Positions 788-25,619 of a stretch of 25,992 bases of DNA are shown here, piece by piece; the first letter of the stretch is position 1, and every line of letters starts with the position of its first letter. The notes beneath the pieces are model-generated. The model worked only from the letters and a program-made list of their open reading frames with translations, did no database searches and was not told the origin of the DNA. The position numbers and the translations under genes are program-made. The stretch is taken from sequence record MT446416.1; one strand, written 5' to 3'.

Positions 788-1170
788 TACAAGTTTCTTA
801 AAAAATCTAGTAAACCGCAAATTGTATGTTTATTAAACATATCGTGGTCAATCTTTAACAACTTAACCATAGCATTATCATACACCGTAGAGTCGGTAAT
901 GTCAAACAAAGAATTTGTGTAATAACGTTCATTTTCTACATAAATGTATAATTCATTTGATTTGTCAAGATCTTCATAGAAGTTAGCATCAAAGTACTCT
1001 GCATTTCCATCAATCCAAACCTCAACTGAATCATCATATAAGCAGTAGTTTCTTGCTTCTTTTGAATATATTTCCAGCTTTCTGGCTGCACTGGAGTAAT
1101 GTTTATAACCATTAATCACGTACTTGATTTCATCATTGTACTCAATTATATATACAACAACATTTTCCAT
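787..1170 (-). CDS. hypothetical protein
   Basis: 127-aa ORF, start overlaps the upstream stop, phage-like composition. Confidence 0.75.
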   Translation of the reverse strand: MENVVVYIIEYNDEIKYVINGYKHYSSAARKLEIYSKEARNYCLYDDSVEVWIDGNAEYFDANFYEDLDKSNELYIYVENERYYTNSLFDITDSTVYDNAMVKLLKIDHDMFNKHTICGLLDFLRNL

Positions 1171-1565
1171 CAGTACACCCCTATTGACGCAAGAGCATGA
1201 AGAAATTCATATCGTATACCAACTGGGATGTCATCAAAATCAATCTCAATCATTCTTAGTGAATTTGAAAATTGTTCGTATCTAAAGAACATATTAATTG
1301 ATAAAGTACTGAATGGTAACACACCACCACGTCTATCATCATTAATTAGAACATACACCTTTCCCGTAAATGAATCTAAATCGTCTGCTTGTTTTACATC
1401 ACTGGTGAAGTGATGCCTATCTTTCATCACAGTACCAGTACCATCAGGATTGTAGTATTGGGTTTTGTCACAAGAGTATAGCATACGCATACCCAATCGT
1501 TGAAACATATAACAACTACCCAATATAACAAGCATTTTATCATCAATGTGAAGTGTATGTATCAT
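1170..1565 (-). CDS. hypothetical protein
   Basis: 131-aa ORF tightly packed with neighbours. Confidence 0.75.
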   Translation of the reverse strand: MIHTLHIDDKMLVILGSCYMFQRLGMRMLYSCDKTQYYNPDGTGTVMKDRHHFTSDVKQADDLDSFTGKVYVLINDDRRGGVLPFSTLSINMFFRYEQFSNSLRMIEIDFDDIPVGIRYEFLHALASIGVY

Positions 1566-1574
1566 AACATTACC

Positions 1575-2366
1575 TTAGATTTCAAATACAAATTTAGGAT
1601 CGTAATCGAAGTTCTCACATGCACCACTGTAAGATTCATAACCTCTTGGGTTACAAATGATACGAGTTTTCCCAATATTGTAGTCAAAGCTACTATGAAC
1701 GTGACCATGAATCCAAACATCAGCACCCAAATCTTCGATGTACTGGTCCATATCAGAACAATAACATCCATTCAGTGAGTCATTCTTGTATCTCGGAGAT
1801 ACACTCTGATAACTTGGTGCATGATGTGTTACCACCACAACCTTGAAATCATTATCATTCATTAGACGAACTGTGTCAACTGAATTTTTGATAAATTGTT
1901 TATCCTGATAATGCATGAACTCAACATCATCAGGTTTGAACTTACGTTTCCACGGTTCTGATGTTGTTCCATGACGAATGTGTTTATAATCATTCATCTT
2001 TTGTTGAGCATCAAACTTAACCAGTGCATTGCCTTTATCAAAGTCAGTCCACAGTGTACTACCAACCAGCAGTACACCATCCAGCCATACAAATTTGTTT
2101 TGCAAAAAGATGAAATTTGGAATCTCATCTTGCATATCGGACAGTACTTTATTAGTCTTGTGAATGTTTGAACCGTAGTACTCATGATTACCAGGAACCA
2201 GTACTACATTTTTGAACTGCTTACACAGTGATTCGATACCAGTACGGTAACGACTGCGTTTAACTTCATCGAAGTCCCCAGCAATGATCAGTACTGTATC
2301 ACTGTAATCACCACTATGGAGGTAATCAGTTCCACCGTGTACATCAGATGTTACGACAAATTTCAT
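1575..2366 (-). CDS. calcineurin-like metallophosphoesterase
   Basis: Motifs SDVH, AGD, GNHE, HHAP, HGHVH, NPRGY; start moved to ATG 2366 behind GGAGGT. Confidence 0.9.
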   Translation of the reverse strand: MKFVVTSDVHGGTDYLHSGDYSDTVLIIAGDFDEVKRSRYRTGIESLCKQFKNVVLVPGNHEYYGSNIHKTNKVLSDMQDEIPNFIFLQNKFVWLDGVLLVGSTLWTDFDKGNALVKFDAQQKMNDYKHIRHGTTSEPWKRKFKPDDVEFMHYQDKQFIKNSVDTVRLMNDNDFKVVVVTHHAPSYQSVSPRYKNDSLNGCYCSDMDQYIEDLGADVWIHGHVHSSFDYNIGKTRIICNPRGYESYSGACENFDYDPKFVFEI

Positions 2367-2380
2367 AATTACCTCCGTAG

Positions 2381-3461
2381 TTATTTTATTCTTACCCCAC
2401 CCCAATTCTCATATATTTCAATGATTTTGTCAATGTCTAAAGGTGATGTGGTTTCGGTATATCCGTCTTTCATTTCACGAGCATCAAGTACATGTGAAAA
2501 AGTTCTTTTACATTCAGCTTCTGCTGATTTACATAACGTGACCGATTCAAACTCCCATACGCCACAATTATTAACATCATAGATGGAATGTTTATTTTGG
2601 GATTTTTCTCTGGTTGTATAATTATTGGCAATACCATATTTTAATGCAATAGGAACCCCACTGTCAAGTACTAAATTTATGTAACATTGTTGTTGGTTGT
2701 TTCCATTACATGAACACGACACTTTACCACTTTTGAGATTACCCTGTTGACATTCACATACATCTCCACATACTGGACATTTATAAAACCAAAATATCGG
2801 ATGTCCATGATTATTCAAACGCTTAGATCTCCAAAACTTTGTACATGGATGGTATTTGCCAGTACTAAGAAAATCGTTTATATGAATATTATCATCAAAC
2901 AATCTACTCTGGCCTATTCTTTCATTACCACAATCATTACATGCTTTGTCATGAAACAGTAAATTGTCAATAGATGTTGTATTCCAGTATCCATGTTTTT
3001 TGCAATGCATTTTTAAATGCACCAACCCTTTTTGACGCACGGAATCCCATGAATCGTAAAAACCAAGGAAAGTATATCCTAACTGATTGCATTTTTCATA
3101 AACTTTCATCGTATATTGATATTTTGTCTTTTTAGATGAATTTGAACAATCACATCCTATTTTACCTTTTGAAATATTACTTTTCATTGATGCAAATATT
3201 CCAGTTCCGTGACATTTTAGGATTTTGTTTACATACATCACATTGTTCAAAATACATCTTAGTATAACCACCGACACCGGTTCTGACGAAACCAATTATA
3301 GAATCGTGGTTTGAACAATACTCATCAGTTTCAAGATTATTAATATCAAAATTTTTGGGAAGCCATTTGTATTTTTCTTCCCAAATTTTATATGATATTA
3401 ATAATGGATCTCCGCTATTATATAAATTGAAATAATCCGTTATTTCTTTATCAATTTTCAT
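2381..3461 (-). pseudogene. Zn-finger free-standing endonuclease-like gene (T5orf172/GIY-YIG-like C-terminus) split by a 1-nt frameshift near 3211-3221
   Basis: ORF 3177..3461 (CDVC) continues into ORF 2381..3295 (CDC, CKKH, CNDC, CPVC, KYGI...DGYTET) if 1 nt is removed; the 1081-nt span minus 1 is 360 codons. Confidence 0.6.
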
Positions 3462-4876
3462 TACTTTATAGAATTTAGTAGTTTAGTACTGAATACTTCA
3501 ATTGAACTCTCTTTAATTTCAAGGATTCGTTCGAAGCTATCACCAGTATCTTTATCATCACGTATACAATCAAATACAGGTAAAAACAAACTTGGTTCAT
3601 TAGTTCTTTTATCATATACAATATCATTACAAATACAAGTTACAATTTTGTCATATAATGAATTTCTGTTATTCCATATATCATCCAACATTTCATCAGT
3701 GAACCCAGTACCACAATTTGTTTTTAGAGTACCACATTCAGATTGAAGTGTCAATGCACCAAGTGTTCCTTTTCGTTTACCTGAACCTTCAATAAAATCT
3801 ACAATACGCAAATCAACCTCCATTTTCAACTTCACTTTTAGGCACGTTGGTGATGTGTGTGATTTAAATACAGAGTCACAACTTTTAATAATACTACCCT
3901 CTTCACCACGTGACATTAGTTCAGTATTGTAATCAAATGCATCTTTGAAATTTTTGAATTTTTTAAATTCAACCATACGAACAAATGTATTATTAACTTC
4001 TGAAATGGCTTTGACTAAATGTTCTCTGCGTTCTATTAGTTTGCAATTCCATGAACCATTATTATAATTATCTAATGGTATTGCATCCCATAAACAAAAT
4101 GCCACACTTTGTGCTTCCAATAAAGTTATAGTATTTTTGCCATCACCAGCTTTGGAAATTATACCATTATTATATGTTCGGGGCATTACAGTTTCACCAT
4201 CTTCACCACCAAGACACACACCCTCACCAATCAATGCAATACCATTAGCATACACAGGATCAATTTTAGCTAATTCCGAAGCAATAGCATTCAAAACATC
4301 ATCTTTTGTTCCAAGAAAATCATATACTTTTGCATTTCTACTGGTGGTTACAATTACACCATTTTTGATAGTGTGTGCAAGATAAGTTCCATCCATTTTA
4401 ACATCGCTGTAAAAATAATCATAATCTTTTAAGTTGATGTTTTTAATAGTTTTCTCGGTAAGAAGACTACAACGCTGGTATGGAACTTCTGAAATAAAGC
4501 CTTTACCGAATACATCATTACAGTTCTTTTCCTGAATACCACAATCAAGGTTCTTGGTAAGCATTTTACGAAGAACTTCCTGATCATCTTCAGAAACAGC
4601 ACCCAGTACTGAAGCAATGAAGTCACGTCCAGCATTTCCGGTCACACCACGTTTGTAAATGCATTCTAGCTTATCAATAGCTTCGTCTAATGTCATATGT
4701 TGATATACATCATCAGCTTGTGGTAGCTTTTTATACCCACTTACAATTGAAGGGTCTAGTGTATATTTCAGTACTTTTTGTAATGTTTGGTTATCTTTGT
4801 TTTGTTCAAGGATAGCTTTTTTACCCAGAGTACTGCTAGTATTTTTAATGCTTTCAAGAATTGCTAAAATGCTCAT
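3461..4876 (-). CDS. lig: ATP-dependent DNA ligase (T4 gp30-like)
   Basis: KMDG (motif I), IGEG, FCLWD, EGSIIK, LKVK; C-terminal OB fold with CGTGFTD. Confidence 0.95.
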   Translation of the reverse strand: MSILAILESIKNTSSTLGKKAILEQNKDNQTLQKVLKYTLDPSIVSGYKKLPQADDVYQHMTLDEAIDKLECIYKRGVTGNAGRDFIASVLGAVSEDDQEVLRKMLTKNLDCGIQEKNCNDVFGKGFISEVPYQRCSLLTEKTIKNINLKDYDYFYSDVKMDGTYLAHTIKNGVIVTTSRNAKVYDFLGTKDDVLNAIASELAKIDPVYANGIALIGEGVCLGGEDGETVMPRTYNNGIISKAGDGKNTITLLEAQSVAFCLWDAIPLDNYNNGSWNCKLIERREHLVKAISEVNNTFVRMVEFKKFKNFKDAFDYNTELMSRGEEGSIIKSCDSVFKSHTSPTCLKVKLKMEVDLRIVDFIEGSGKRKGTLGALTLQSECGTLKTNCGTGFTDEMLDDIWNNRNSLYDKIVTCICNDIVYDKRTNEPSLFLPVFDCIRDDKDTGDSFERILEIKESSIEVFSTKLLNSIK

Positions 4877-4887
4877 TGTATATTCCC

Positions 4888-6724: not shown

Positions 6725-6734
6725 TTCTATTTCC

Positions 6735-7617: not shown

Positions 7618-7648
7618 AACAACCACTCCATGTCAGTGTCGTAATGAA

Positions 7649-9809: not shown

Positions 9810-10742
9810 TCAAAAACGTCCAAAATCTACTTGAAATACCTTCAAACCAAGTAGCTTACGCCACATGAACGTCACGGCTTCGCGGTCATCATATACCTTT
9901 TTAACATCGTATTGATTAACCACATTTTTCATGTACAGGTCGAATTTAACAACATCATCAGGACGTTTATCATCGATGCCTCGCATAAACAATGCATCGT
10001 AAGGAACACCCCAATTCTTAAGCCACTGTTCGGTGTCAGTACGACACCCTTCAGTACGCCCACTCATGACGATAATCTTGCGTTTATGAAAAACTGCTTC
10101 TGCGATAATAGACAAAATAACTTCTTCGTCTGGTGTATCCTGGAGTACAGTACTTTCATCGAACGGGTTACGGCCCCATTTATGAGCAAGAGTTCCATCG
10201 ATATCAACGATGATAGCAGCTTCGCGTGAATTACCATAGTAACCAATGTGTAATGCCTTACTATAATAGTACGTATCTGCCATTGTGTCAATGATATTAT
10301 CTTGTACTGAACGCTCACGCTGGAGGTTATATTTCTTACAAAGTTTTACGAACTCTTTAATCTTAAAGAATTCATGAACATCTGCACCACGGTCTTCATT
10401 AGGTACAAAATCATCATAGAAGTTCTTTTCTTTGTAATCATAACCATTATCTTTAGCCCACATTTTCCATTGATCACGGAAATGTGGTTTAAGGTTCGTA
10501 TCGGATACGATGATATTCCAACTATTCTCCGCTGCTGAATTTGCTGCACTGAACTGTAAATTAGTTACGTACTTCTCATTAGCATCATTGAATTTGTAAG
10601 CATCATGTGACCCAGCCATAGATTCACGAATATCATCACGGTTGATGTTGATAGTCTTGGATTTGGCTTTTTTAATCTCTTGCACTGCCCATGTAGTTTT
10701 ACCACACCCAGGCAATCCAACTGTTAGTGTGATAGTTGGCAT
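9810..10742 (-). CDS. pseT: polynucleotide 5'-kinase/3'-phosphatase (T4 PseT-like)
   Basis: P-loop GLPGCGKTT, INRDDIR, HAD motif DIDGTLA, SGR, YDDR. Confidence 0.95.
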   Translation of the reverse strand: MPTITLTVGLPGCGKTTWAVQEIKKAKSKTININRDDIRESMAGSHDAYKFNDANEKYVTNLQFSAANSAAENSWNIIVSDTNLKPHFRDQWKMWAKDNGYDYKEKNFYDDFVPNEDRGADVHEFFKIKEFVKLCKKYNLQRERSVQDNIIDTMADTYYYSKALHIGYYGNSREAAIIVDIDGTLAHKWGRNPFDESTVLQDTPDEEVILSIIAEAVFHKRKIIVMSGRTEGCRTDTEQWLKNWGVPYDALFMRGIDDKRPDDVVKFDLYMKNVVNQYDVKKVYDDREAVTFMWRKLLGLKVFQVDFGRF

Positions 10743-11538: not shown

Positions 11539-11564
11539 TTCTCCTTGTGCTAGGCTAGATAGTA

Positions 11565-12707
11565 CTAAAAATCCTTTAGTACAATTTTCATGTACTTAAT
11601 AAGAGTCTCTTTGTAATCGACTTTCTTATTGTTGTACATTGCAAAGGCCAAGCCCTGACGATTCAGTTCATTAGTTAAACACTCCTGAACCTTCTTAGCG
11701 AATTCCTTTCGCTCCAAGTGCTTGTGTTCCTTGACGAAGCTTTCAACTTCATCTTGTAAAGCATTATAGCACGAAAAGACTAGTTGTTCCATTCTTAATA
11801 TCTTTTGAGTAGCATATTCGTCAGTACTGAACAACTGTTTTAAATCATCACTCGAACCATTTAATACAGCTTCATATAAATGGGAATCGAATATAATACT
11901 GTCTTTCGTTAAATGCAAAGAACAATACCAGTCGGTTTTGATTTTGCACATTGTACCATTATTTAGGATGCACACAAAACCTTCAATGTCAAGCATTTTC
12001 TTAACTTCTTCAACACTTTCTTTGAATGTAGTACGAACAGGGAAAGTGTAATGAATATCTTTACCTGTCATATTAGTACTGTACTGTGCAAGGCATGGAA
12101 ACTTATTACGTAATGCAGAACCACATAATAGTTCACCACTCTTGCGATGGCGAACGTTTAGTACAAATAATTGTTCAACCTGGTATGGTAATACAATTCG
12201 GTACTCTGGACTTGTATACTCCAGATTAACAGTATAGCCCAAACGGTCTGCTTCGTCAATGTATTGATACAAATTTTGGTTCTCGGTGAGAAGACGAGTG
12301 CTGTTAATCGCATGGTCTGAATACAATGCAGTATGTGATTTACAACGAATCTCACCATCATTATCACGGTAAGTACTGATCACTGAACCATCCAACTTAG
12401 GCATCACTACCGCAATGTCATCGCAGGTGGTATCAGCAGGGAACATTGTAGCAGGATTCTCGTAAGCATTGAAGAACTTTTTCATAGTACGAGCAGCACA
12501 ACGAATCATATTACCTTCTTCATCAATTTCCCACATAGATCCACGGGTTTCTAATGCATTGGGTTGCATGAAATCAGTATATGATGCTAGACGATAACTG
12601 AATACACGATACGTTCCACCAGCAGGACTTTTATGATCCACATAAAAGAAAGCCTCACGGGTATTACATAAGTGCATTAAATCTTCATATATTTGTAAAA
12701 GGGTCAT
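11565..12707 (-). CDS. rnlA: RNA ligase 1 (T4 RnlA-like)
   Basis: ALETRG, KKFFN..EN, motif I KLDGS, EGFV, KIKTDWY, all resembling T4 Rnl1. Confidence 0.93.
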   Translation of the reverse strand: MTLLQIYEDLMHLCNTREAFFYVDHKSPAGGTYRVFSYRLASYTDFMQPNALETRGSMWEIDEEGNMIRCAARTMKKFFNAYENPATMFPADTTCDDIAVVMPKLDGSVISTYRDNDGEIRCKSHTALYSDHAINSTRLLTENQNLYQYIDEADRLGYTVNLEYTSPEYRIVLPYQVEQLFVLNVRHRKSGELLCGSALRNKFPCLAQYSTNMTGKDIHYTFPVRTTFKESVEEVKKMLDIEGFVCILNNGTMCKIKTDWYCSLHLTKDSIIFDSHLYEAVLNGSSDDLKQLFSTDEYATQKILRMEQLVFSCYNALQDEVESFVKEHKHLERKEFAKKVQECLTNELNRQGLAFAMYNNKKVDYKETLIKYMKIVLKDF

Positions 12708-14240: not shown

Positions 14241-14543
14241 TTATCCTCTTAGTTTAATAGTACTGGCTGGATAATCTACCATAGTACTATCTGGTAATCC
14301 TATACAGTAATAAGGAAAATATCCCATCTTTATATTAATACCAATTAACATTCCAGTTTTATATGAAGTATTAATTTCATAGTGGTCGTCTATATCAACT
14401 GCCAGTCCATATAAGGATATATTACAATCCTTGATGTATCGTTCAAAGATTTTATACATTGATGGGTATAAAGTTCCATTGGATTCTTTTACTACATCAG
14501 CCAACAACTTTATAGTACTGTTAATTAAATCTATACTGAGCAT
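14241..14543 (-). CDS. hypothetical protein (helix + beta-domain small family)
   Basis: 100-aa ORF. Confidence 0.7.
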   Translation of the reverse strand: MLSIDLINSTIKLLADVVKESNGTLYPSMYKIFERYIKDCNISLYGLAVDIDDHYEINTSYKTGMLIGINIKMGYFPYYCIGLPDSTMVDYPASTIKLRG

Positions 14544-14556
14544 CTTTGTACCTGCG

Positions 14557-14580
14557 AAAAAAGACCAGCAAACGCTGGCC
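14557..14580 (-). terminator. intrinsic terminator
   Basis: GGCCAGC-gttt-GCTGGTC followed by TTTTTT. Confidence 0.8.
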
Positions 14581-14587
14581 TATATTT

Positions 14588-14872
14588 TTATTTTAACTCA
14601 CTACAAGTGTATATACCGACAGTATCATCAGAAAATGTAATATAGAAATACACACCACGGGTATCAAATGAAATTTCATCAATTGTACCTGTTTTATTCA
14701 TAGTCTTATGTGTAACTTCTTTATTCACATAAAGGTATAAACTATTAAATTCCTTTGAATATTCATCAATCATATTGCTAAAATAATTGCAGTATGACAT
14801 ATCAGTATTATAAATTTCATTATACAAAGAAATATACTGGTAGAATGTCCAAGCATGTGAGTTAAAATCCAT
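14588..14872 (-). CDS. hypothetical protein (helix + beta-domain small family)
   Basis: 94-aa ORF with AGGA SD. Confidence 0.75.
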   Translation of the reverse strand: MDFNSHAWTFYQYISLYNEIYNTDMSYCNYFSNMIDEYSKEFNSLYLYVNKEVTHKTMNKTGTIDEISFDTRGVYFYITFSDDTVGIYTCSELK

Positions 14873-14881
14873 AACAGTTCC

Positions 14882-15610
14882 TTAGAAATATACCATACCC
14901 ATCAATTCTGAATCTTCAGGGCGAGTATAACCTTGTTTCTTAACTTTAAAGTAGAAGGATTCATTATCTTCTAAATTATAACGTTTCTTTAAGCAACGGG
15001 TGTATGTTTGGCAATTAGGTGAAACCCATTCATAAACATGAACACCATTTTCATCATAACCATTAATACTACAACGGTTTCCTTCGTGTTTCTTGAAGTT
15101 TTTACTCTTCTCAGTGAATTCTTTTACCGATGTAGTGGATGGTTTTTTATATTCAAATGGAACTTCTGTTATACGAAAATAGAAATATTGGTCGTCTTCA
15201 TCATATCCAACTAGCACTGTGTTAGTTTCACGTACATTGTAATGATTCTTACTTTTCAATTCATTTTCATATATATCTTTTAATACCTCATCGAATACAA
15301 TATCACTTGCTGCATTTGGGTCTGAAACCCCACTAATACGGCGTTCAATAATAAAATCGGTGAATTTGCGGTCTTCTGAAATATCTTCATTCATATAAAG
15401 ACTTACGAACTTATCCTTGTATGTCTTTACGCTATATTGTTTGCTTTGAACTTCACTATAAACATCAGCTAACATGTTAGCTTGTCCACATTGTATACCG
15501 CTAGATGAATATGCCGCAGCATGTTCAGCCATAACAGATGTTAACATTTGGAAATTTGCAATATTGAGTTGATTCGCCATTTCTGTTGCAAATTTTATAT
15601 TATCTATCAT
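14882..15610 (-). CDS. hypothetical protein
   Basis: 242-aa ORF with AAGGA SD. Confidence 0.8.
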   Translation of the reverse strand: MIDNIKFATEMANQLNIANFQMLTSVMAEHAAAYSSSGIQCGQANMLADVYSEVQSKQYSVKTYKDKFVSLYMNEDISEDRKFTDFIIERRISGVSDPNAASDIVFDEVLKDIYENELKSKNHYNVRETNTVLVGYDEDDQYFYFRITEVPFEYKKPSTTSVKEFTEKSKNFKKHEGNRCSINGYDENGVHVYEWVSPNCQTYTRCLKKRYNLEDNESFYFKVKKQGYTRPEDSELMGMVYF

Positions 15611-15635
15611 TTCACATTCCTTGTGTTTATGATTT

Positions 15636-16568
15636 TCATATTTTTAATTTATTTTCGAGTAAACATTTACATACATAATCAATAACAAGATTTATGTCTT
15701 GTAAATCAAATGTTTCAGTATACCCATCACCAAAATAATCCTTTGGCAATTTACTACTATTTTTAAGCAGATTTAAAATATTATATTCTACACTTTTAAT
15801 AACTTCGGTATTTCCAGTAAAATAATATAATTCCTCTACTATAAAATTAGTTTTTGACCTAATACTAATTAGTCTTGATTTATCAATCTTTGTAGAAATA
15901 CCAACTTTATATTTTATTAAAATATTTTGTTCATATATTCCTAAAATATATAATTTACTTTCTTCTGGGATTGGTCTGATACAATTGCAGTTAAGAGATC
16001 CACATTTAACTCTACTATAATTAATATATTTGTCAAAATTACACGCTGTACAATAAAATCTAACCTTATATTGTGTACCACGGTATGTAGATTTATCCAT
16101 ATATATTGTATTTGAGTAATCTTTTATTTTATTCATAATAGTGTTATATGCTTCGTCGATATCTAACGGCATACAATATGATGAATGACATTTACAATAT
16201 GAACCTCTAGACTTAACATCATGCACCGTCATATATCTTTCAAACGCACAATCGTCACAATAAAATCTAGATTTGTTTTTTGTAGTTGTGAATGTGGAAA
16301 TATCTAATTTTAATTTTGAATTAATTTCACCCAATTTATTATATAAAGTTTTAAATGTGGGACAGTGACAAAATATTCCATTTTTGTACACATTCCTAAC
16401 TATGATATTTTTACTAAACCCACATTCATCACAGAAAAAAGTTGATTTGTTTGATATGGTAGTGTATGTTGTTCTATCCATTTTTACCGATGAACCAATT
16501 GAACTCAATTTTTCATCAACCAGTCTGAATACTTCAGAATCTGGCTTTTTACTTGGCACTTTACACAC
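15636..16568 (-). CDS. Zn-finger-repeat free-standing endonuclease-like protein (T5orf172/GIY-YIG-like C-terminus)
   Basis: Three CxxC...CxC repeats, LYI...KVGIS...SRL, DGYTETF; start may be GTG 16559. Confidence 0.7.
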   Translation of the reverse strand: MCKVPSKKPDSEVFRLVDEKLSSIGSSVKMDRTTYTTISNKSTFFCDECGFSKNIIVRNVYKNGIFCHCPTFKTLYNKLGEINSKLKLDISTFTTTKNKSRFYCDDCAFERYMTVHDVKSRGSYCKCHSSYCMPLDIDEAYNTIMNKIKDYSNTIYMDKSTYRGTQYKVRFYCTACNFDKYINYSRVKCGSLNCNCIRPIPEESKLYILGIYEQNILIKYKVGISTKIDKSRLISIRSKTNFIVEELYYFTGNTEVIKSVEYNILNLLKNSSKLPKDYFGDGYTETFDLQDINLVIDYVCKCLLENKLKI

Positions 16569-16599
16569 TCCTTGTGTTAGTTATTGTTCCTCATCCAAT

Positions 16600-16625
16600 A
16601 TTATATCACTACTTGAGCCATTGTC
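16600..16625 (-). promoter_or_regulatory. promoter GACA-N16-TATAAT with TGn extended -10
   Basis: Minus strand GGGACA atggctcaagtagTGA TATAAT. Confidence 0.65.
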
Positions 16626-16920
16626 CCGCTTTGTAACAATAAAGATTCTCAAATTTAAAGTTCTCTATATCACATTCCTCACGTACTCGATTCTTGTTCC
16701 AGAATAAAATACGAATCCTTTCATAATCACGATAAACACTAATAATGCTTCTGTGTTTAGATTTATAATATTCTTTTACAATATCAAGATACATTGACCT
16801 AAGTAACGATTTCACTGGATAAGACAAATCCTGTGCCGTAGTAATAAAGTAAATCATCTTCATTGTTTCAGCAATAAGAACTTCATTTGTTGTATTTGTC
16901 ATTGTAATCCTTACATACAC
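16609..16920 (-). CDS. hypothetical protein
   Basis: 103-aa ORF; start uncertain (possibly 16902). Confidence 0.65.
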   Translation of the reverse strand: MYVRITMTNTTNEVLIAETMKMIYFITTAQDLSYPVKSLLRSMYLDIVKEYYKSKHRSIISVYRDYERIRILFWNKNRVREECDIENFKFENLYCYKAGQWLK

Positions 16921-17065
16921 TATGTAAAGTAAATCCTAAACCAACACCAACAATTGGGAATAGTAAATTAACATACCATGTGTTCATTGTTAAAAAGGAA
17001 TAAGCACCTGAAGCTGTCAGTACTGCAATAGAAAAAAGACTCCAGATAAAAAATAATGCTCTCAT
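16883..17065 (-). CDS. small two-TM membrane protein
   Basis: 60 aa with two hydrophobic helices. Confidence 0.7.
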   Translation of the reverse strand: MRALFFIWSLFSIAVLTASGAYSFLTMNTWYVNLLFPIVGVGLGFTLHSVCKDYNDKYNK

Positions 17066-19201: not shown

Positions 19202-19213
19202 ATTTCCCCTTAC

Positions 19214-19242
19214 AAAAATAGCCCGAACTTATGTCGGGCTAT
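19214..19242 (-). terminator. intrinsic terminator
   Basis: ATAGCCCGA-cataagt-TCGGGCTAT followed by TTTT. Confidence 0.85.
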
Positions 19243-19247
19243 ATGTG

Positions 19248-20133: not shown

Positions 20134-20419
20134 GTAAGTTCGCCAGGAAGTCAATTACTTCTTCATGTGTTAACTTATCACTACGCTCTAGAACATTGAT
20201 GATGAATGGTGTTTGACTATATAATTCAGCCAGAAACGCAACTTCATCAGATGTATAAGAATATCCCATAGGAACAACTTGTGCAGTCCAGTTTCCTAAA
20301 GTTTTGTTTGCAATGATTGCAACCACCGTATTACCTTTGAATTCAACATGGATTGAACGGAAACCCGAATCCTCATTCTGATCCCAAAGTACTGGGTTAG
20401 TTTTAAACAGTACTGACAT
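20126..20419 (-). CDS. hypothetical protein
   Basis: 97-aa ORF with GAGG SD. Confidence 0.75.
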   Translation of the reverse strand: MSVLFKTNPVLWDQNEDSGFRSIHVEFKGNTVVAIIANKTLGNWTAQVVPMGYSYTSDEVAFLAELYSQTPFIINVLERSDKLTHEEVIDFLANLHV

Positions 20420-20421
20420 AG

Positions 20422-20955
20422 TTATTTCCTCATGTATTTTATTACATCTTCAAATAGTTTAGTTTTCAGTGCATCATCATTACCAGGTAGAAAAGTACTG
20501 AAGCTATTAAAATCTTCATTCTTGGCAAACTCACGCATCTGTGTGGAACTGTAGCGACTTACATTTCGGTCAATTCCAGCTTGAACTGCCTTGATTGAAC
20601 AAAAATTATATAACTTCCCATTGTACGTGTCAAGCGTTTTTTGGAATGGTTCAAGTCTGTCTGAACCACATATGAAAAGAACATCTAAGTACTTTCCATC
20701 CAGTTCTCTCATTATATCAAACAGATTATCTTCTGTATAGATATTTTCTTGTACAGATGGGTAAAATCCTTCTGTATAGTACATTTTCAGTTCAGGAGGT
20801 AATGGGTTTTTGACGGCATCAGTACTGGTACTAAGGAATATTTTCAAATCAGCATTGTACTGTTCTTGTAGTGCTTGGGCTTTTTCAAACACTAAACCAT
20901 GTCCATTGTGGACTGGGTTACATCTCATGAATGTCACTACGCATGTTTCTTTCAT
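20422..20955 (-). CDS. cytidylyltransferase-like (HxGH) nucleotidyltransferase
   Basis: RCNPVHNGH, KNPL, GSDR, SSTQMR motifs of the CTP_transf-like family; substrate unknown. Confidence 0.8.
   Translation of the reverse strand: MKETCVVTFMRCNPVHNGHGLVFEKAQALQEQYNADLKIFLSTSTDAVKNPLPPELKMYYTEGFYPSVQENIYTEDNLFDIMRELDGKYLDVLFICGSDRLEPFQKTLDTYNGKLYNFCSIKAVQAGIDRNVSRYSSTQMREFAKNEDFNSFSTFLPGNDDALKTKLFEDVIKYMRK
20605..20633 (-). promoter_or_regulatory. perfect sigma70 consensus promoter inside the nucleotidyltransferase CDS
   Basis: TTGACA cgtacaatgggaagtta (17 nt) TATAAT. Confidence 0.55.
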
Positions 20956-21476
20956 ATGTTCTTCATCACCTGACCAAGAGATTTAAGATAGTTGATTTTA
21001 GCTGGAGTCAAATACTTATCCAGTACTATTAAACAACTAGGGAATGGAGCACTGTCCGTCTTTTTATCTGGTTCTTCAGGGATACCGAATTTTAAGCGAC
21101 CTTTTATAAAACAAATACAGTCGCATTCTTTTGATGCATAGTTCTGAAACGCAACCGTATCGGTACGTGAAGGTACAAGTATCAGTACTGTAGCACCTTT
21201 GTTATATGCATCAACTGCCTTAGATAACCACGTTTTCAAATCACTGTACGGTGGGTTGAGCCACACGATATTGTTTCCCCAGTCCTGTTCAAGTGAATTG
21301 TCTTCTGGTGTAAAGAACTTATCACACAATGCTGTTTCTTTAACACATGCTGCATCTAGTGTAAATTCCCAGAGTTCATCCAAATCTTCAAAGAAATCCT
21401 TTGGAGTAGTCCAGTTATCTTTTCCAGTACTGAAATGTACTGATTGTTTTTTCTTCGAAGCATCCTTCTTCGACAT
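20952..21476 (-). CDS. phage Dam-family DNA N6-adenine methyltransferase (PF05869-like)
   Basis: WTTP..FF, FTLDAAC, WLNPPY, LVPSRTDT, FIKGRLKF; target specificity cannot be read from the sequence. Confidence 0.9.
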   Translation of the reverse strand: MSKKDASKKKQSVHFSTGKDNWTTPKDFFEDLDELWEFTLDAACVKETALCDKFFTPEDNSLEQDWGNNIVWLNPPYSDLKTWLSKAVDAYNKGATVLILVPSRTDTVAFQNYASKECDCICFIKGRLKFGIPEEPDKKTDSAPFPSCLIVLDKYLTPAKINYLKSLGQVMKNI

Positions 21477-21492
21477 ACATAATTTCCTTTGA

Positions 21493-22038
21493 TTATAGAC
21501 AGTTAAGTACTATGTCATCAAAAGTACTACTGTCAATGTTGTATTCATATAAAAATTTAAAATGTGATCCATAACGCATCATCAGATTAAACTCTTCTTC
21601 AGTATTAAATTTGTAATCATGAAGAGTTTCAAGGGTACATGTTAAACCTAAAAACTCAATAATTTCTGATGTTACATCATTTCCTGAATTGAAGTATTTA
21701 ACCCAAACACATTTTCCTTGTGGGTTGAATTTTCTATATTCTCCTTCTAGTTCTCCATTGACGATATGTGCTTTCGCACTGATTAGATTATTACTATAAC
21801 GCTCTTCGTAGTAGTTCCCATAACGAGCTTTAAGAATTGTAGGCTTCTTGGTTGGGAATAACTTAATGGAAGTTAATTCAAAACCGCACTGCAACTCTTT
21901 GATGTACGAAATACATCCCTTTTCTTTAATCACAACAAAACCAGTAAAATTCTCCTGGTCTTGGTTCTGATTGTCTGAATCAACAAATTCTAGTGTTTTA
22001 TAAGTGACGCTTTTAGATTTTTTAATAAATGACATCAT
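21493..22038 (-). CDS. hypothetical protein with a MORN-like repeat and an EEEFNL motif
   Basis: NGELEGEYRKFNPQG; start moved to ATG 22038 behind AGGA. Confidence 0.7.
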   Translation of the reverse strand: MMSFIKKSKSVTYKTLEFVDSDNQNQDQENFTGFVVIKEKGCISYIKELQCGFELTSIKLFPTKKPTILKARYGNYYEERYSNNLISAKAHIVNGELEGEYRKFNPQGKCVWVKYFNSGNDVTSEIIEFLGLTCTLETLHDYKFNTEEEFNLMMRYGSHFKFLYEYNIDSSTFDDIVLNCL

Positions 22039-22094
22039 TATTCCTATGGAAACATCAATGACTGTCCATGGCGTTGACTTCATCAACACCAGTC

Positions 22095-22125
22095 GAATTA
22101 TACACGCTTCGCATGTATAATTCAA
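22095..22125. promoter_or_regulatory. 13-bp hairpin containing a sigma70-like promoter on each strand
   Basis: GAATTATACACGC-ttc-GCATGTATAATTC; minus strand TTGAAT-17-TATAAT, plus strand TCGAAT-17-TATAAT. Confidence 0.55.
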
Positions 22126-22129
22126 CGAA

Positions 22130-22656
22130 AGTACTATGATTTGTTTTAATTAATATTGACGGGGTTTGCTTGAGCATATTTCATCCCCCCGCAGGGGAAA
22201 GAACAAAAAAGTTTGACGCTGGTGGCCTTCACATAGTTCATATCACGAATTCTCTTACGAGGCGAAAGCGGGTTGCTCTGTTTCTCTCTATCGCGGTTCT
22301 TGTAGCAACGGTCGTCGGTCTTAAACATCCCGACACATAATACAAATACCATATGACCAGTACTTGTATTTGATTTCACGAATTTTGGACGCAACTATTT
22401 TGTATAAATTACGACCGCAAATTTCTCATGAAATCTCCCTTAGATAATTGGTAAGGTGCGATCCTTATATGTCTATCGAGGAACTCTCTTTATCCTATTG
22501 GAGTTCTTTATACAGCCGCATTGCCGTGAGTGGTTCAAACTATGCCATCATCTAACGGGTTTCATTTGCTGTTCGTACTGAAAGGACTACTCATCTACCC
22601 TCTACTTTTCGAGTGGATTAGGCTTCAATCATTTCCATATGGAACCTTTCAGGATT
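22130..22656. ncRNA. candidate structured non-coding RNA or origin-like region, family not recognised
   Basis: Longest gene-free stretch, visibly more GC-rich, several hairpins, flanked by promoters. Confidence 0.4.
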
Positions 22657-22690
22657 AAAAAAAGGTGACAACATATTCTGCTGTCACCTT
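22657..22690 (-). terminator. intrinsic terminator overlapping a promoter start site
   Basis: AAGGTGACA-11 nt-TGTCACCTT followed by a T run. Confidence 0.8.
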
Positions 22691-22692
22691 AC

Positions 22693-22718
22693 ATTATATC
22701 ATAAACTTATGGTATGTC
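22693..22718 (-). promoter_or_regulatory. promoter GACA-N16-TATAAT with TGn extended -10
   Basis: Minus strand GAGACA taccataagtttaTGA TATAAT. Confidence 0.65.
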
Positions 22719-23582
22719 TCAGTTGTATTCTGTTTTTTCAGTGAAATTCGTTAAGATATCTGCACTTAAGCTTCTCATAACCTCAATCTTACTTGGCATG
22801 AACCTGTGCTTGTTTTTTACATACAACTCATCATCTTCAATGAAAGATGTGAACATGAATACCATATCTTCACGTGGAATTGAGAGAATATTACAGTTTT
22901 CATTTTCAGTAACAGGGGAATCCCCGTAGTACTTAGAGAATGCAGTACTTTGACGACCGATTATGATAGAATTTCGGATTAGAAAATTACTACAGTACTG
23001 AAAATCTTTGTAGTACTTGTCAAGGATATATGGCATTATCGCTTCTTTCACTTCTTCATATCCATTTGAACTATCAATTTCAGTACAATAATCTTCTCGG
23101 TCTTTTTTCCCTCGATGATTATCAAACTCGTACTCAAAGAATAAATTTTTATTTGATGAATCTGAATCATTTAAACCAACTGATCCACTATAGTATGAAT
23201 TTCGTGAATTTCTATCCTTCATTCGATCATCCGGGCATGATGCATACATAGAAATGTCATGTGTTGACGTACCGATATAAATTTTCTTAGTAATGTGATT
23301 GTACGCGATGTAATCATAATCTTGTACTCCAGTGAGCATTAACTGGAACATCAATTCATCAGGAACATCAATTAACGGGTACTCAAACTTCGAATATCTA
23401 CTACGACAGAAATTCTTTTCAAATGCTCGGTGTGCGATGAAATCTTTTAGATTTGTAATAGATTCATGCTCATGTGTATTACTGGTGCGTACATTGACAT
23501 TAGTAGACGAGCAATACCCTTCAGATTCTTCTGCGTAGACATAAAAACCCTTACTGTAGTCAACGATTAGATAAAGTTTCAT
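22719..23582 (-). CDS. hypothetical protein with a DELMFQL motif
   Basis: 287-aa ORF with GGAG SD. Confidence 0.8.
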   Translation of the reverse strand: MKLYLIVDYSKGFYVYAEESEGYCSSTNVNVRTSNTHEHESITNLKDFIAHRAFEKNFCRSRYSKFEYPLIDVPDELMFQLMLTGVQDYDYIAYNHITKKIYIGTSTHDISMYASCPDDRMKDRNSRNSYYSGSVGLNDSDSSNKNLFFEYEFDNHRGKKDREDYCTEIDSSNGYEEVKEAIMPYILDKYYKDFQYCSNFLIRNSIIIGRQSTAFSKYYGDSPVTENENCNILSIPREDMVFMFTSFIEDDELYVKNKHRFMPSKIEVMRSLSADILTNFTEKTEYN

Positions 23583-23594
23583 ATATCTCCAGAC

Positions 23595-23628
23595 AAAAAA
23601 AAGGACGAGATATTATATCCAGTCCTTT
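23595..23628 (-). terminator. intrinsic terminator with TATAAT in its loop
   Basis: AAAGGAC-tggatataatatctc-GTCCTTT followed by a T run. Confidence 0.7.
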
Positions 23629-23634
23629 GGTTTA

Positions 23635-23940
23635 TTAGTGGCTTGCCCAGCAGTAAACAGGACGTAGATTTTCCATTGGGTTTACTTCAGGCTTCAGTAC
23701 TGTAACACGAACTTCATACGGAGTACCATCTGCATGATGGAACGTTTCGTAATGAATACTCTCAATGAAGGTTTCATATTCTTCTTGAGAACGTGAACGA
23801 ACTGATGGGGAATATTTCTTTTTGGTATCTGATTTTAGCGTAACACTTACTAGTTCTGTTTCTTCACCTTCTTCAAGTTTATTGAAATCGAACTCTGGTA
23901 CACCTTCAAACATATCAAATTTCATTCCGTTGTCTTCCAT
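23635..23940 (-). CDS. hypothetical protein
   Basis: 101-aa ORF with AAGGA SD. Confidence 0.8.
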   Translation of the reverse strand: MEDNGMKFDMFEGVPEFDFNKLEEGEETELVSVTLKSDTKKKYSPSVRSRSQEEYETFIESIHYETFHHADGTPYEVRVTVLKPEVNPMENLRPVYCWASH

Positions 23941-23991
23941 TTTAAATTCCTTTTTATATAATGTTAGTTAGATAGTTTTTAATAAATCAGA

Positions 23992-24378
23992 TTAGATTAC
24001 GTCATACGGTAGAGTACCGTGACGGAATTTATCAAGTTGTGCAAGAACTTCTTTACGTTCGACAATCTCTGGCACATCTTCTTGCAGTTGGTCACATACT
24101 TCAACGATGAAATCCCAATCGCTCTCACAACTCACACGTACTGCTTCAATTGTTTTCCAATCAGCACTAATTTCACCTTCAGGATTTACATACGAAGGCC
24201 ATACCTTTCCATAGTCTTGTACTGATTTGTCGTTAAGAACACGAATAGCATTGAAAATCTGTCCAGTACTGAAGTGTTTAGTATTCTTCATGTCTTCTAA
24301 GCAACATAGCTTAGGTTCACCCTGGACTTCAATCAGAAGTACACCACCAATCGCTTTTAGAACAGAACTTGTATTCAT
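23992..24378 (-). CDS. hypothetical protein with its own promoter
   Basis: 128-aa ORF with GGAG SD. Confidence 0.8.
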   Translation of the reverse strand: MNTSSVLKAIGGVLLIEVQGEPKLCCLEDMKNTKHFSTGQIFNAIRVLNDKSVQDYGKVWPSYVNPEGEISADWKTIEAVRVSCESDWDFIVEVCDQLQEDVPEIVERKEVLAQLDKFRHGTLPYDVI

Positions 24379-24413
24379 CTATATCTCCATTTATCAAAAA
24401 AAAAGATGTGAAC

Positions 24414-24439
24414 ATTATATCACAAGGAATTGTTATGTC
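24414..24439 (-). promoter_or_regulatory. promoter GACA-N16-TATAAT with TGn extended -10 and a TGTGA-N8-TCACA palindrome
   Basis: Minus strand TGGACA taacaattccttgTGA TATAAT gtTCACATC followed by T9. Confidence 0.7.
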
Positions 24440-24451
24440 CACAATATTTTA

Positions 24452-24745
24452 TCAAATAGTCAAACTTTCGTGCCAGTTATTGAAATCGTTAATAGCCAGC
24501 ATAAACATATTCTCATCATTAAATTCTAGAATATGTTCATTGTATAAGTAGCTAATGTACTTATTACTACAGTGTTTGCTATTCATAATTAGCATTTCAA
24601 CTGCACGTTCATACGAACATGGGCTGAGATACAATTTTGTTCCATCAGGATGCTCAATCTCCACTGCACCAGGTGGAATAAAACGTTCACCAGTATAAGG
24701 GATATACGGTTCTGTTTTGAAAATAAGTTTGAATTTAGTATCCAT
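24452..24745 (-). CDS. hypothetical protein
   Basis: 97-aa ORF with GGAGG SD. Confidence 0.75.
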   Translation of the reverse strand: MDTKFKLIFKTEPYIPYTGERFIPPGAVEIEHPDGTKLYLSPCSYERAVEMLIMNSKHCSNKYISYLYNEHILEFNDENMFMLAINDFNNWHESLTI

Positions 24746-24761
24746 ACCAAATCCTCCATAA

Positions 24762-25619
24762 TTACATTGTTTCTTTTATGTTGCACAACATAGTATTAAC
24801 TATGTTCATCTTCCCGCCTAACTTGAAGTAATATTCCAATTTATTAATAATATTACTTTTTAATATCTCAAATAGTTGATATTCATTTGTTTCGAAACCA
24901 AGTTCGAATTGAAAAGTATATAAATTGTTGAATAGATGTACTAAAGATGCATCCGGTGAATGCATTGTAAATGTGTAGTTGGCACGATAACCAGTACTAA
25001 TCACTACTTCTGATATATCACCTTTCATGTATATGTCAATATTGTACATCATTGGTCTGCCTGTTGCAATATCTTTCATGCGAAAGAATGCAGTGCTACG
25101 ATAAACAACACCTTCTTCTGTAACTTTTTCTTGAATAGTGATATTTGAAACGTCACTCTCTTTGAATTTGGACTCGAATGAATGTGTGTAGCTTGTTTTT
25201 TCATTATCCGCGTGCATAGTACATGTGTACTTTCCAAAATCATCTCTAGATGTATATGATTTATCACTGGCGGTTTTATAGAACGAAACCCCATTGATGT
25301 GTTCTTCTTTGTACATCATAGTGTCATTGGATTTGTAGTATGAACAATTAGGTGTTGAAAGAGATTCAAAAATGTTCACATCATGACAGTAAGAAATAGA
25401 AGAATCGCTATACAGTACTACATCACGAATTGCAACTTCTTTTGAAGTACCTTTTTTGACAGAAATTTGAAAGTCATTGCATGGGAAGATTCTATATCCA
25501 TCGTATGTATCTGATGTACTGATGCCAAATGGTGTTGGGGAATTTAGAAATTCGTTGATATGTTCAAGTACTGAATACTTTTTGAAATTGCGAAAGTCAG
25601 TGCTATCTAACATATACAA
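24762..25619 (-). CDS. hypothetical protein
   Basis: 285-aa ORF with GGAG SD. Confidence 0.8.
   Translation of the reverse strand: MYMLDSTDFRNFKKYSVLEHINEFLNSPTPFGISTSDTYDGYRIFPCNDFQISVKKGTSKEVAIRDVVLYSDSSISYCHDVNIFESLSTPNCSYYKSNDTMMYKEEHINGVSFYKTASDKSYTSRDDFGKYTCTMHADNEKTSYTHSFESKFKESDVSNITIQEKVTEEGVVYRSTAFFRMKDIATGRPMMYNIDIYMKGDISEVVISTGYRANYTFTMHSPDASLVHLFNNLYTFQFELGFETNEYQLFEILKSNIINKLEYYFKLGGKMNIVNTMLCNIKETM

Follow-up and report, generated by a model that had tools for sequence, protein, structure and literature searches.

Why does a 350-kb Escherichia coli phage, which has purged almost every other short palindrome from its genome, carry the palindrome AGTACT as its commonest six-letter word? 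The question was raised by a 25,992-nt stretch of record MT446416.1 (hereafter, the window), which belongs to Escherichia virus TH47, an Asteriusvirus jumbo phage. A sequence-only reading of this window had described about 73 AGTACT sites and 17 copies of an extended 8-bp form, against roughly 9 and well under 1 expected. It had proposed a HIP1-like signal, maintained either as a methylation mark or as a binding site for a DNA-organising phage protein. Recounting gave exactly these numbers, at the following positions.

993 to 25572, no strand: 73 AGTACT sites, about one per 356 bp, starting at 993, 1305, 2143, 2177, 2200, 2290, 2667, 2861, 3485, 4605, 4770, 4829, 5333, 5958, 6220, 6343, 6387, 6756, 7168, 7192, 7204, 7540, 8511, 8573, 8886, 10149, 11380, 11561, 11823, 12075, 12372, 12816, 13119, 13509, 13727, 13802, 14210, 14259, 14283, 14514, 17019, 17191, 17430, 17776, 18010, 18129, 18499, 18798, 18984, 19133, 19310, 20057, 20388, 20409, 20494, 20688, 20821, 21022, 21184, 21426, 21506, 21523, 22130, 22359, 22928, 22944, 22994, 23012, 23696, 24265, 24993, 25414 and 25567.
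2289 to 24271, no strand: 17 copies of the 8-bp palindrome CAGTACTG, starting at 2289, 4604, 5332, 6219, 7539, 8885, 11822, 13508, 17018, 18797, 20408, 20820, 21183, 21425, 22993, 23695 and 24264.

The first step was to compare these counts with null models. At the GC content of the window (33.5%), 8.7 AGTACT sites are expected from composition (an 8.4× excess) and 13.0 from an order-2 Markov model, while 0.24 copies of CAGTACTG are expected. AGTACT is the single most frequent hexamer of the window, with 73 occurrences against 55 for the next. Only high-order Markov models absorb the excess (63 sites at order 4), because the sub-words AGTAC and GTACT are themselves common mainly through the motif. 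Synonymous-codon shuffles of the window that keep every protein give 29.1±3.8 sites (maximum 40 in 500 shuffles), against 66 observed in coding sequences, and 40.6±3.5 (maximum 52) when codon-junction dinucleotides are also kept. Loss of the signal under a codon- and dipeptide-preserving shuffle had been named beforehand as grounds for rejecting it, and this loss was not observed.

The same holds for the whole genome, which contains 917 AGTACT sites against 119 expected from composition (7.7×) and 189 from an order-2 Markov model, and 203 copies of CAGTACTG against 3.6 expected (56×). AGTACT is again the top hexamer, and the top 8-mers and 10-mers all contain it. Coding sites number 758, against 339±14 after a synonymous shuffle, 478±11 with junctions kept, and 129 after a codon-order shuffle. 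The initial observation is real, and stronger than first described.

The second step was to determine whether the signal resides in the DNA or in the encoded proteins. Sites fall in all three codon frames (371/141/246 genome-wide), and 159 lie in non-coding DNA, where their density is higher (3.9 against 2.4 per kb). The positional claims of the initial reading also hold, for all three frames, for the site at a stop codon, and for the two sites placed in non-coding DNA:

11561 to 11566, no strand: AGTACT overlapping the TAG stop codon of the RNA ligase gene (11565-12707, minus strand).
22126 to 22718, no strand: stretch between genes carrying the AGTACT sites at 22130 (intergenic) and 22359 (in a 600-bp stretch that is unannotated in phage PBECO4). 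PBECO4 has no annotated gene between gp149 and gp150, and an open reading frame scan finds only a weak 82-aa ORF with a TTG start here.

Flank preferences are symmetric (C at -1 in 47%, G at +1 in 44%) and persist in non-coding DNA. Information content is 0.3 bit at ±1 and at most 0.04 bit further out, so that the sites are not part of a dispersed repeat element. The motif has left a footprint on proteins, as Ser-Thr, Val-Leu, and Gln-Tyr dipeptides are directionally enriched (for example, Ser-Thr 1.51× against Thr-Ser 0.96×).

The third step was to examine whether the sites are maintained or turn over neutrally. In the comparison with PBECO4, 568 of 813 sites are kept against 365 expected (70% against 45%), which is the highest ratio among 179 words of the same composition. 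Synonymous third positions are 87.4% conserved inside sites against 72.3% outside, for example 86% against 67% for ACT (p=3e-11) and 94% against 53% for CAG. Conservation is graded with flank quality, CAGTACTG being the best-conserved form (82%, against 61% for sites without the C/G flanks). Between genera, 34-47% of sites keep their position against a 19% background, about twofold, while density is maintained. These results indicate selection rather than neutral turnover. Segments absent from PBECO4 carry fewer sites genome-wide (1.77 against 2.72 per kb), and two regions of the window are of interest in this respect:

14520 to 17018, no strand: 2.5-kb gap without any AGTACT (between the sites at 14514 and 17019), the largest in the window, with 29.5% GC. 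It holds a free-standing endonuclease gene (15636-16568, minus strand; phrog_681) and three ORFs of unknown function, and only 62% of it is alignable to PBECO4, at 80% identity.
2381 to 3295, minus strand: second phrog_681 endonuclease gene (E=7.5e-43), in a segment absent from PBECO4 (2377-3704 unaligned), probably a mobile insertion.

The enrichment is clade-wide. Coliphage, Salmonella, Cronobacter, Erwinia, Klebsiella, and Xanthomonas relatives show a 5-12× excess, whereas the Pseudomonas sister lineage, with the same GC content, depletes the site (4 against 31 expected, made up of 0 against 14.1 and 4 against 16.8 in phage Paride). The excess also stands against a purged background. GCGC occurs 0 times in the genome against 329 expected, and 25 of the 27 strongly depleted palindromic hexamers, including GGTACC and CGTACG, occur 0-1 times, the genome being otherwise almost free of GC-rich palindromes.

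The fourth step was to look for an enzyme that could protect the site. A candidate lies inside the window, paired with a second gene:

20952 to 21476, minus strand: orphan phage-type N6-adenine DNA methyltransferase, 174 aa, candidate modifier of AGTACT, itself containing sites at 21022, 21184, and 21426.
20422 to 20955, minus strand: cytidylyltransferase-like gene (phrog_3041, E=1.5e-53) overlapping the methyltransferase stop by 4 bp.

The assignment relies on a match to Pfam PF05869 'Dam' (E=3.5e-33, 115.1 bits against a cut-off of 28.1), and on an NPPY catalytic motif at residues 74-77. TIGR01712 scores 95.3 bits, just below its equivalog cut-off of 97.05. Orthologues occur in all enriched lineages, among them Asteriusvirus, Salmonella, Klebsiella, Erwinia, Serratia, and Xanthomonas jumbo phages, all sampled lineages being enriched 5-12×, and the gene pair is annotated in PBECO4, RaK2, K64-1, Hallingskeid, and Munch. 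No Pseudomonas record was found among 116 hits at E≤1e-30. Paride has an orthologue of the cytidylyltransferase-like gene, but the methyltransferase was not found beside it or anywhere in the 91 kb examined. The absence from PA5oct-like phages rests on these 91 kb and a collection-wide tblastn summary, not on a complete genome scan. A second orphan methyltransferase, a C5-cytosine enzyme (PF00145) encoded outside the window, matches the distribution of the enrichment less well. As for DNA modification, the RaK2 paper reports only that the RaK2 DNA resists methylation-sensitive enzymes and contains m5CpG, with data not shown (PMC3622015).

Two further features concern the terminal repeat, where site density is highest (6.6 per kb, with 16 sites in the first 1.76 kb of non-coding DNA). 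At least 19 early promoters of the form AGTACTTGCA-N17-TATAAT lie in this repeat, with the site abutting the -35 element and, in several of them, a second site abutting the -10 element 21 bp away. The bulk of the sites is, nevertheless, spread almost uniformly through genes. Moreover, two blocks just inside the terminal repeat replace AGTACT by a strand-specific variant (TGTACT/AGTACA). The sequence-only reading missed these blocks, as well as the palindrome-poor background and the depletion in the sister lineage.

The explanation we favor, although only tentatively, is that AGTACT, with CAGTACTG as its optimum, is a genome-wide, DNA-level recognition site kept by natural selection in the RaK2-like clade of jumbo phages. 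In this view, it would be read on double-stranded DNA by a two-fold symmetric phage protein, and could be so abundant in a genome that purges other palindromes because it is most likely protected by methylation, the conserved N6-adenine methyltransferase of the window being the best candidate, giving AGTm6ACT. The sites would then mark phage DNA at about 40 times the density seen in host DNA (3 sites in a 50-kb sample of E. coli K-12), and some may act as operators in early promoters. The analysis itself establishes the enrichment over null models, selection at the DNA level, the clade distribution, the depletion in the sister lineage, the presence and catalytic motif of the methyltransferase, and the promoter placement, whereas methylation of the site, the enzyme responsible, what reads the site, and the function served are inferred. 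Several observations weigh against this explanation. Characterized members of the enzyme family (T1 and Stx-phage Dam) methylate GATC, although GATC is depleted 2× in this genome, which would be unnecessary if the phage enzyme protected it; this is only suggestive. Staphylococcus phage 80 carries a 48%-identical homologue and is not enriched (9 sites against 13.7), so that the enzyme alone does not create the excess. Graded flank preferences that differ between lineages look more like a DNA-binding protein than a type II methyltransferase, and the AGTACT-free, TGTACT-rich block is not explained by a simple methylation mark. The interpretation given by the sequence-only reading is, thus, partly supported: the signal is palindromic, at the DNA level, and maintained by selection, a candidate methyltransferase with a matching phyletic distribution exists, and HIP1 is a fair analogy, while the methylation mark itself remains an inference.

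The alternative which that reading also named, a binding site for a phage protein, is equally alive, although as a complete explanation we consider it less likely. AGTACT would be the operator of a non-enzymatic dimeric regulator or nucleoid organiser, which coats or organises the 350-kb genome and switches early promoters, the methyltransferase being unrelated or incidental. The 8-bp palindromic optimum with its graded, lineage-variable flanks, the promoter placement, the high density in the terminal repeat, and a small excess of 20-23 bp spacings are in favor of it. However, no candidate binder was identified, and the almost uniform spread through genes is unusual for a regulator. Binding also does not explain how 917 ScaI-type sites escape the restriction pressure that removed nearly all other palindromes, unless binding itself protects them.

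A more doubtful possibility is that AGTACW is the template recognition site of the phage's T4-type primase, with a cryptic 3' base and a pppGUACU primer. The palindrome would supply priming sites on both strands at once, and the methyltransferase would only protect this indispensable site from restriction. The half-site AGTAC is enriched about 2× with any 3' base and 7.7× with T, and the phage has a T4-like replisome with a primase. In the two blocks just inside the terminal repeat, only one strand carries the half-site, and the orientation flips across a 2-kb AGTACT-dense core, as expected on either side of a fixed origin. The block variant is itself conserved (30 of 41, against a 53.5% background). 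Nevertheless, the idea is entirely inferential, and one of the two blocks is a tandem array of about 70-aa paralogues with the variant at paralogous positions, so duplication explains much of it. There is no genome-wide strand skew, the symmetric flank preference and the promoter placement are not predicted, and known primases need only 3 specified bases.

It is unlikely that the excess is a non-functional by-product of biased mutation or repair tied to a methyltransferase, such as very-short-patch-type correction regenerating the methylated palindrome, a kind of link that Elhai proposed for HIP1 (PMC4390886). Two orphan methyltransferases are present, one of them a C5-cytosine enzyme, and biased repair would also mimic purifying selection at synonymous positions. 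Nevertheless, none of the 18 one-mismatch neighbors is depleted, with observed/expected ratios of 1.04 for AGTATT and 1.20 for AATACT, the words that deamination repair would drain. No Vsr-like gene is annotated in PBECO4, and the C5 enzyme is not evident in the Erwinia group, which is enriched. Conservation depends on flanks outside the hexamer, and a block-specific switch to TGTACT is not expected from a genome-wide repair bias. Finally, although an order-4 model predicts 63 of the 73 sites and the proteome is rich in Ser-Thr and Val-Leu, a compositional, codon-usage, or dipeptide artefact, or a short dispersed repeat family, is refuted by the protein-preserving shuffles (z=26-30), the higher non-coding density, the directional dipeptide bias (a consequence rather than a cause), the lack of information beyond ±1, and the enrichment of the same hexamer in phages of hosts from E. 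coli to Xanthomonas alongside its depletion in a sister lineage of the same GC content.

A bolder reading, unlikely but compatible with the data, is that RaK2-like jumbo phages write a dense sequence code into their own DNA, a methylated palindrome read by phage machinery for replication priming, early-promoter switching, or self/non-self discrimination. This code would be strong enough to have reshaped the proteome, and would have a strand-specific dialect (TGTACT/AGTACA) on either side of a control region just inside the terminal repeat. This would be the first HIP-like system in a virus, and one with a tractable genetic handle. Hyper-abundant palindromes such as HIP1 have resisted explanation for thirty years, in part because they sit in large cellular genomes with several redundant methyltransferases. 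The present case is more tractable, as it occurs in culturable coliphages with one small candidate methyltransferase, a sister lineage that does the opposite, a natural variant block, and sites embedded in a defined set of promoters. It also shows that a phage under extreme restriction-avoidance pressure can hold one palindrome at 8× excess, which implies a function valuable enough to constrain hundreds of codons and even dipeptide usage. In practice, the motif is a simple diagnostic of the clade, and predicts the ScaI/Eco255I behavior of these therapeutic-candidate phages.

Several known systems can be compared. The primase sites of T7 (fully specified, 5 nt) and T4 (GTT/GCT with a cryptic 3' T) are short template words needed at high density on both strands, and AGTAC plus a cryptic W would fit this geometry. 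This link is a conjecture, as known sites are 3-5 nt, not palindromic, and not reported as the top word of a genome. Over-represented oriented words (Chi, KOPS, DUS/USS) are likewise dense, dispersed, and redundant, turn over in position while density is kept, and distinguish own from foreign DNA, but they are asymmetric and strand-skewed, whereas AGTACT is palindromic, with strand specificity only in the two local blocks. The Dam/GATC system of enterobacteria (SeqA, MutH, promoter control) combines an orphan adenine methyltransferase with a palindromic site read by other proteins, as is proposed for AGTACT, and sites inside promoters can make transcription depend on methylation state. However, GATC is not strongly enriched in E. 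coli, and no SeqA or MutH analogue was identified here. Restriction-site avoidance is shown to an extreme degree by this same genome, and the sister lineage treats AGTACT in this way, while AGTACT, the ScaI site, goes in the opposite direction in this clade.

The closest analogue is HIP1 (GCGATCGC), the highly iterated palindrome of cyanobacteria (PMC4390886, PMC5861425), no report of the AGTACT motif in phages having been found. Both are short palindromes, hyper-abundant against Markov and codon-aware nulls, present in all frames and in non-coding DNA, conserved beyond the neutral expectation, accompanied by orphan DNA methyltransferases, and of unresolved function. AGTACT differs from HIP1 in being carried by a virus rather than a cell, in its 6-bp core (8 bp at its optimum) of different sequence and composition, in its enrichment (7.7× for the hexamer and 56× for the octamer, against 15-300× reported for HIP1), in a methylation that is so far only inferred, in the lack of any quasi-periodicity in the spacings examined, in a genomic background of extreme palindrome avoidance, and in its local strand-specific variant block.

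The window is 100% identical to positions 27,245-53,236 of Escherichia virus TH47 (MT446416.1), an unannotated Asteriusvirus jumbo phage of 352,450 bp, and it is 86-97% identical to PBECO4, 121Q-like, and other coliphages of that genus. The whole TH47 genome and the annotated PBECO4 genome were included, so that the finding could be tested beyond 26 kb. The genes recognized in the window are all on the minus strand. They comprise a ClpP-like head maturation protease, two metallophosphoesterases, about 35 small ORFs of unknown function, a cytidylyltransferase-like gene, and the following located features:

2381-3295, minus strand, free-standing endonuclease gene (phrog_681)
3461-4876, minus strand, ATP-dependent DNA ligase
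9810-10742, minus strand, polynucleotide kinase
11565-12707, minus strand, RNA ligase 1
15636-16568, minus strand, free-standing endonuclease gene (phrog_681), paralogous to the first
20952-21476, minus strand, phage-type N6-adenine methyltransferase

The enrichment described in the sequence-only reading, about 73 AGTACT and 17 CAGTACTG, is confirmed and extended: the window contains exactly 73 and 17 copies, respectively. The expected number of AGTACT is 8.7 from composition and 13 from an order-2 Markov model, while 0.24 CAGTACTG are expected. AGTACT is the commonest hexamer of the window and of the genome, with 917 copies against 119 expected (one per 384 bp), and the commonest 8-mers and 10-mers (TCAGTACT, CAGTACTG, TTCAGTACTG, and others) all contain it. 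PBECO4 has 891 copies. High-order Markov models absorb part of the excess, but only because AGTAC and GTACT are common through the motif itself.

The signal is at the DNA level and is not a coding by-product. With 531 called genes, sites fall in frames 0/1/2 as 371/141/246, and 159 lie outside genes, where density is higher (3.9 against 2.4 per kb). Shuffling synonymous codons within each gene, which keeps every protein and each gene's codon usage, gives 339±14 coding sites against 758 observed (z≈30). Also keeping the third-base/first-base junction dinucleotides gives 478±11 (z≈26), while shuffling codon order gives 129. For the window alone, 66 coding sites are observed, against 29.1±3.8 and 40.6±3.5 for the first two shuffles. 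The gap between 129 and 339 means that the proteins themselves have been shaped, and directional dipeptide skews across the TH47 proteome match the three reading frames of the motif. Ser-Thr is at 1.51× expectation and Thr-Ser at 0.96×, Val-Leu at 1.33× and Leu-Val at 0.96×, and Gln-Tyr at 1.38× and Tyr-Gln at 1.02×. Of 712 Ser-Thr pairs, 371 are written AGT-ACT, against 108 expected from codon usage.

The flanks of the site are symmetric, with C at -1 in 47% and G at +1 in 44% of sites, while G at -1 (7%) and C at +1 (10%) are disfavored. A flank logo shows no information beyond ±1, which rules out a dispersed repeat. The C/G preference persists in non-coding DNA, but varies between lineages: it is strong in Asteriusvirus and K64-1, and weak in the Erwinia, Salmonella, and Xanthomonas relatives, although G at -1 is disfavored everywhere. 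Spacing analysis revealed no regular phasing, only a small excess at 20-23 bp, traceable to two-site promoters. No genome-wide strand skew of half-sites was found. The position of the sites relative to genes is nearly uniform, with dips just before start and stop codons and a modest peak after stops.

Comparison of relatives shows that the site is maintained by selection. TH47 and PBECO4 align over 304 kb at 85% identity, and 568 of 813 aligned sites are intact in PBECO4, against 365 expected from frame-matched background, the highest ratio among all 179 hexamers of the same composition. The same codons are more conserved at their synonymous third base when they lie in a site: 86% against 67% for ACT (p=3e-11), 82% against 63% for GTA, 86% against 58% for TAC, and 94% against 53% for CAG, or 87.4% against 72.3% overall. 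Conservation is graded, from 82% for CAGTACTG, through 67-74% with one good flank, to 61% with none. Between genera, at about 73% nucleotide identity, 34-47% of sites keep their position against 19% background, and most sites turn over while density is maintained, which is the behavior of a redundant, distributed signal. Neutral turnover among relatives, set beforehand as an outcome that would count against the signal, is, therefore, not what is observed.

Segments absent from PBECO4 are site-poor (1.77 against 2.72 per kb), and the 2.5-kb site-free gap of the window, which carries one of the phrog_681 endonucleases, is similarly site-poor, as expected for recently acquired DNA. The two endonuclease genes, probably encoding homing endonucleases, lie in segments missing or poorly aligned in PBECO4. 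Site density around 15636-16568 is zero, while window 2377-3704 carries 3 sites.

The phyletic pattern was examined in samples of about 41 kb, and indicates that the trait belongs to the RaK2-like phage lineage, not to a host.

Observed and expected numbers of AGTACT in samples of about 41 kb.
PBECO4: 66 observed, 13.9 expected
Salmonella PHA46: 65 observed, 13.7 expected
Cronobacter GAP32: 82 observed, 13.8 expected
Erwinia pEa_SNUABM_44: 86 observed, 13.9 expected
Klebsiella K64-1: 79 observed, 13.9 expected
Xanthomonas XaC1: 159 observed, 13.6 expected
Ralstonia RsoM2USA: 10 observed, 12.9 expected
Pseudomonas Paride, sample 1: 0 observed, 14.1 expected
Pseudomonas Paride, sample 2: 4 observed, 16.8 expected

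The strongest enrichment is that of XaC1, sampled at 30-70.5 kb, with 159 AGTACT in 40.5 kb (11.7×, one per 255 bp) and a different flank preference (107 AAGTAC, but only 11 CAGTACTG). RsoM2USA, a distant relative, is neutral. Paride, from the PA5oct-like sister lineage and with a capsid protein 66% identical, depletes the site. In its first sample AGTACT is the only AT-rich palindrome at zero, in the second it ties for the lowest count, and taken together Paride has about 0.13 of the expected number.

TH47 is otherwise almost free of GC-rich palindromes, and extreme palindrome avoidance is also seen in PBECO4, GAP32, and K64-1. In TH47, GCGC occurs 0 times against 329 expected, and twenty-five palindromic hexamers occur 0-1 times against 10-35 expected each, including CTGCAG, GAGCTC, GTCGAC, and also GGTACC and CGTACG, which share the GTAC core. 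GATC is at 0.51 of expectation. A few palindromes escape: GTGCAC is at 2.5× in TH47, and CACGTG at about 3× in GAP32, PHA46, and the Erwinia phage, while ACGT is at 1.0×, perhaps as the target of a C5-cytosine methyltransferase. The genome is evidently exposed to type II restriction, yet it holds one ScaI-type palindrome at 7.7× excess. This argues that AGTACT is specifically protected, and also that a general GTAC modification is not the protection. TAAATA is the most depleted hexamer of the genome against an order-2 Markov model (203 observed, 523 expected), which is consistent with avoidance of the T4-type late-promoter core TATAAATA inside genes.

The candidate modifying enzyme is the 174-aa methyltransferase at 20952-21476, which matches PF05869 (E=3.5e-33) and has an NPPY motif. 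Its gene overlaps the cytidylyltransferase-like gene by 4 bp, a pairing conserved across genera. Orthologues occur in jumbo phages of Asteriusvirus (85-100% identity), Salmonella (66-90%), Klebsiella RaK2/K64-1 (65-69%), Erwinia and Serratia (42-68%), and Xanthomonas (43-49%). No Pseudomonas phage is among the 116 records at E≤1e-30. In Paride, the cytidylyltransferase orthologue is present without a methyltransferase beside it, and no homologue appears in the 91 kb sampled. A scan of IMG/VR with the methyltransferase returned one close relative only, a sequence search of the PDB found no relative, and a literature search on PF05869 gave nothing on specificity. Staphylococcus phage 80 has a 48%-identical homologue and is not enriched, so that the enzyme alone does not generate the excess.

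A second orphan enzyme, PBECO4 gp416, is a C5-cytosine methyltransferase with homologues in Asteriusvirus, GAP32, and RaK2. Erwinia is not among the organism names with four or more records for this enzyme, although eight Erwinia jumbo-phage records carry the N6-adenine enzyme. The adenine enzyme, therefore, fits the distribution better. The RaK2 paper reports m5CpG and general resistance to methylation-sensitive enzymes, with data not shown.

The sites are densest in the direct terminal repeat, annotated as 21,525 bp (positions 1-21,525) in vB_Ec-M-J, which is 97% identical to TH47, and as 20,668 bp in Sharanji. This repeat corresponds to about 88-109 kb of the permuted TH47 record and is full of tiny early genes. 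It carries 6.6 sites per kb, including 16 in its first 1.76 kb, which is non-coding and also holds other short repeats. At least 19 σ70-type early promoters of the form AGTACTTGCA-N17-TATAAT, followed by GAGAGGGG-type ribosome-binding sites, are found there, and several have a second AGTACTG abutting the -10 element 21 bp away. A subset of sites is, therefore, built into early-promoter architecture, which fits an operator role or methylation-dependent promoter control. A 50-kb E. coli K-12 sample has 3 sites against 11.6 expected, and the phage is thus about 40× denser than that host sample.

Just inside the terminal repeat lie two blocks with no AGTACT at all. TH47 71,800-80,207 has 48 TGTACT, in all frames and in non-coding DNA, with the +1 G preference kept, while TH47 82,630-87,592 has 9 AGTACA, the reverse complement of TGTACT. 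A 2-kb core with 14 AGTACT lies between them. In vB_Ec-M-J the blocks lie at 21.4-26.7 and 28.8-37.3 kb. PBECO4 shows the same arrangement (about 116.6-124.3 kb), so it is not an assembly artefact. At paralogous positions AGTACT is replaced by TGTACT, and the variant is itself conserved (30 of 41 against 53.5% background) and never corresponds to AGTACT in PBECO4. The second block is a tandem array of about 70-aa paralogues, which explains much of its pattern, but the first is not so easily explained. The orientation flip is what a strand-specific reader, such as a primase using AGTACW, would produce on either side of a fixed origin, although this is treated as a minority hypothesis.

A repair-driven origin is unlikely, as none of the 18 one-mismatch neighbors is depleted (AGTATT has O/E 1.04 and AATACT 1.20), which is not the signature of VSP repair, and no Vsr-like gene is annotated in PBECO4. 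An SlmA-binding site (GTGAGTACTCAC) was rejected, because G at -1 and C at +1 are the least favored flanks (7-10%) and the trait extends to Xanthomonas phages. LexA-box half-sites were rejected on the arrangement of the half-sites.

The proposal that the motif is a methylation mark or a protein-binding site is partly supported by these results. The best-supported account, still tentative, is a selection-maintained recognition site that is protected, most likely, by the orphan adenine methyltransferase of the window, and read by an unidentified symmetric phage factor. The enrichment, its DNA-level character, and its maintenance by selection are established by the analysis, while methylation of the site, its protection by this enzyme, and its reading by such a factor are inferred. 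In the literature searched, no paper combines AGTACT with jumbo phages, a search on AGTACT with bacteriophage and palindrome gave only unrelated uses of ScaI, and the CBB, RaK2, Sharanji, and PA5oct papers do not mention the motif; no description of it was found for these or any other phages. The nearest known phenomenon is HIP1 (PMC4390886, PMC5861425), of whose defining features methylation is the one that remains an inference here.
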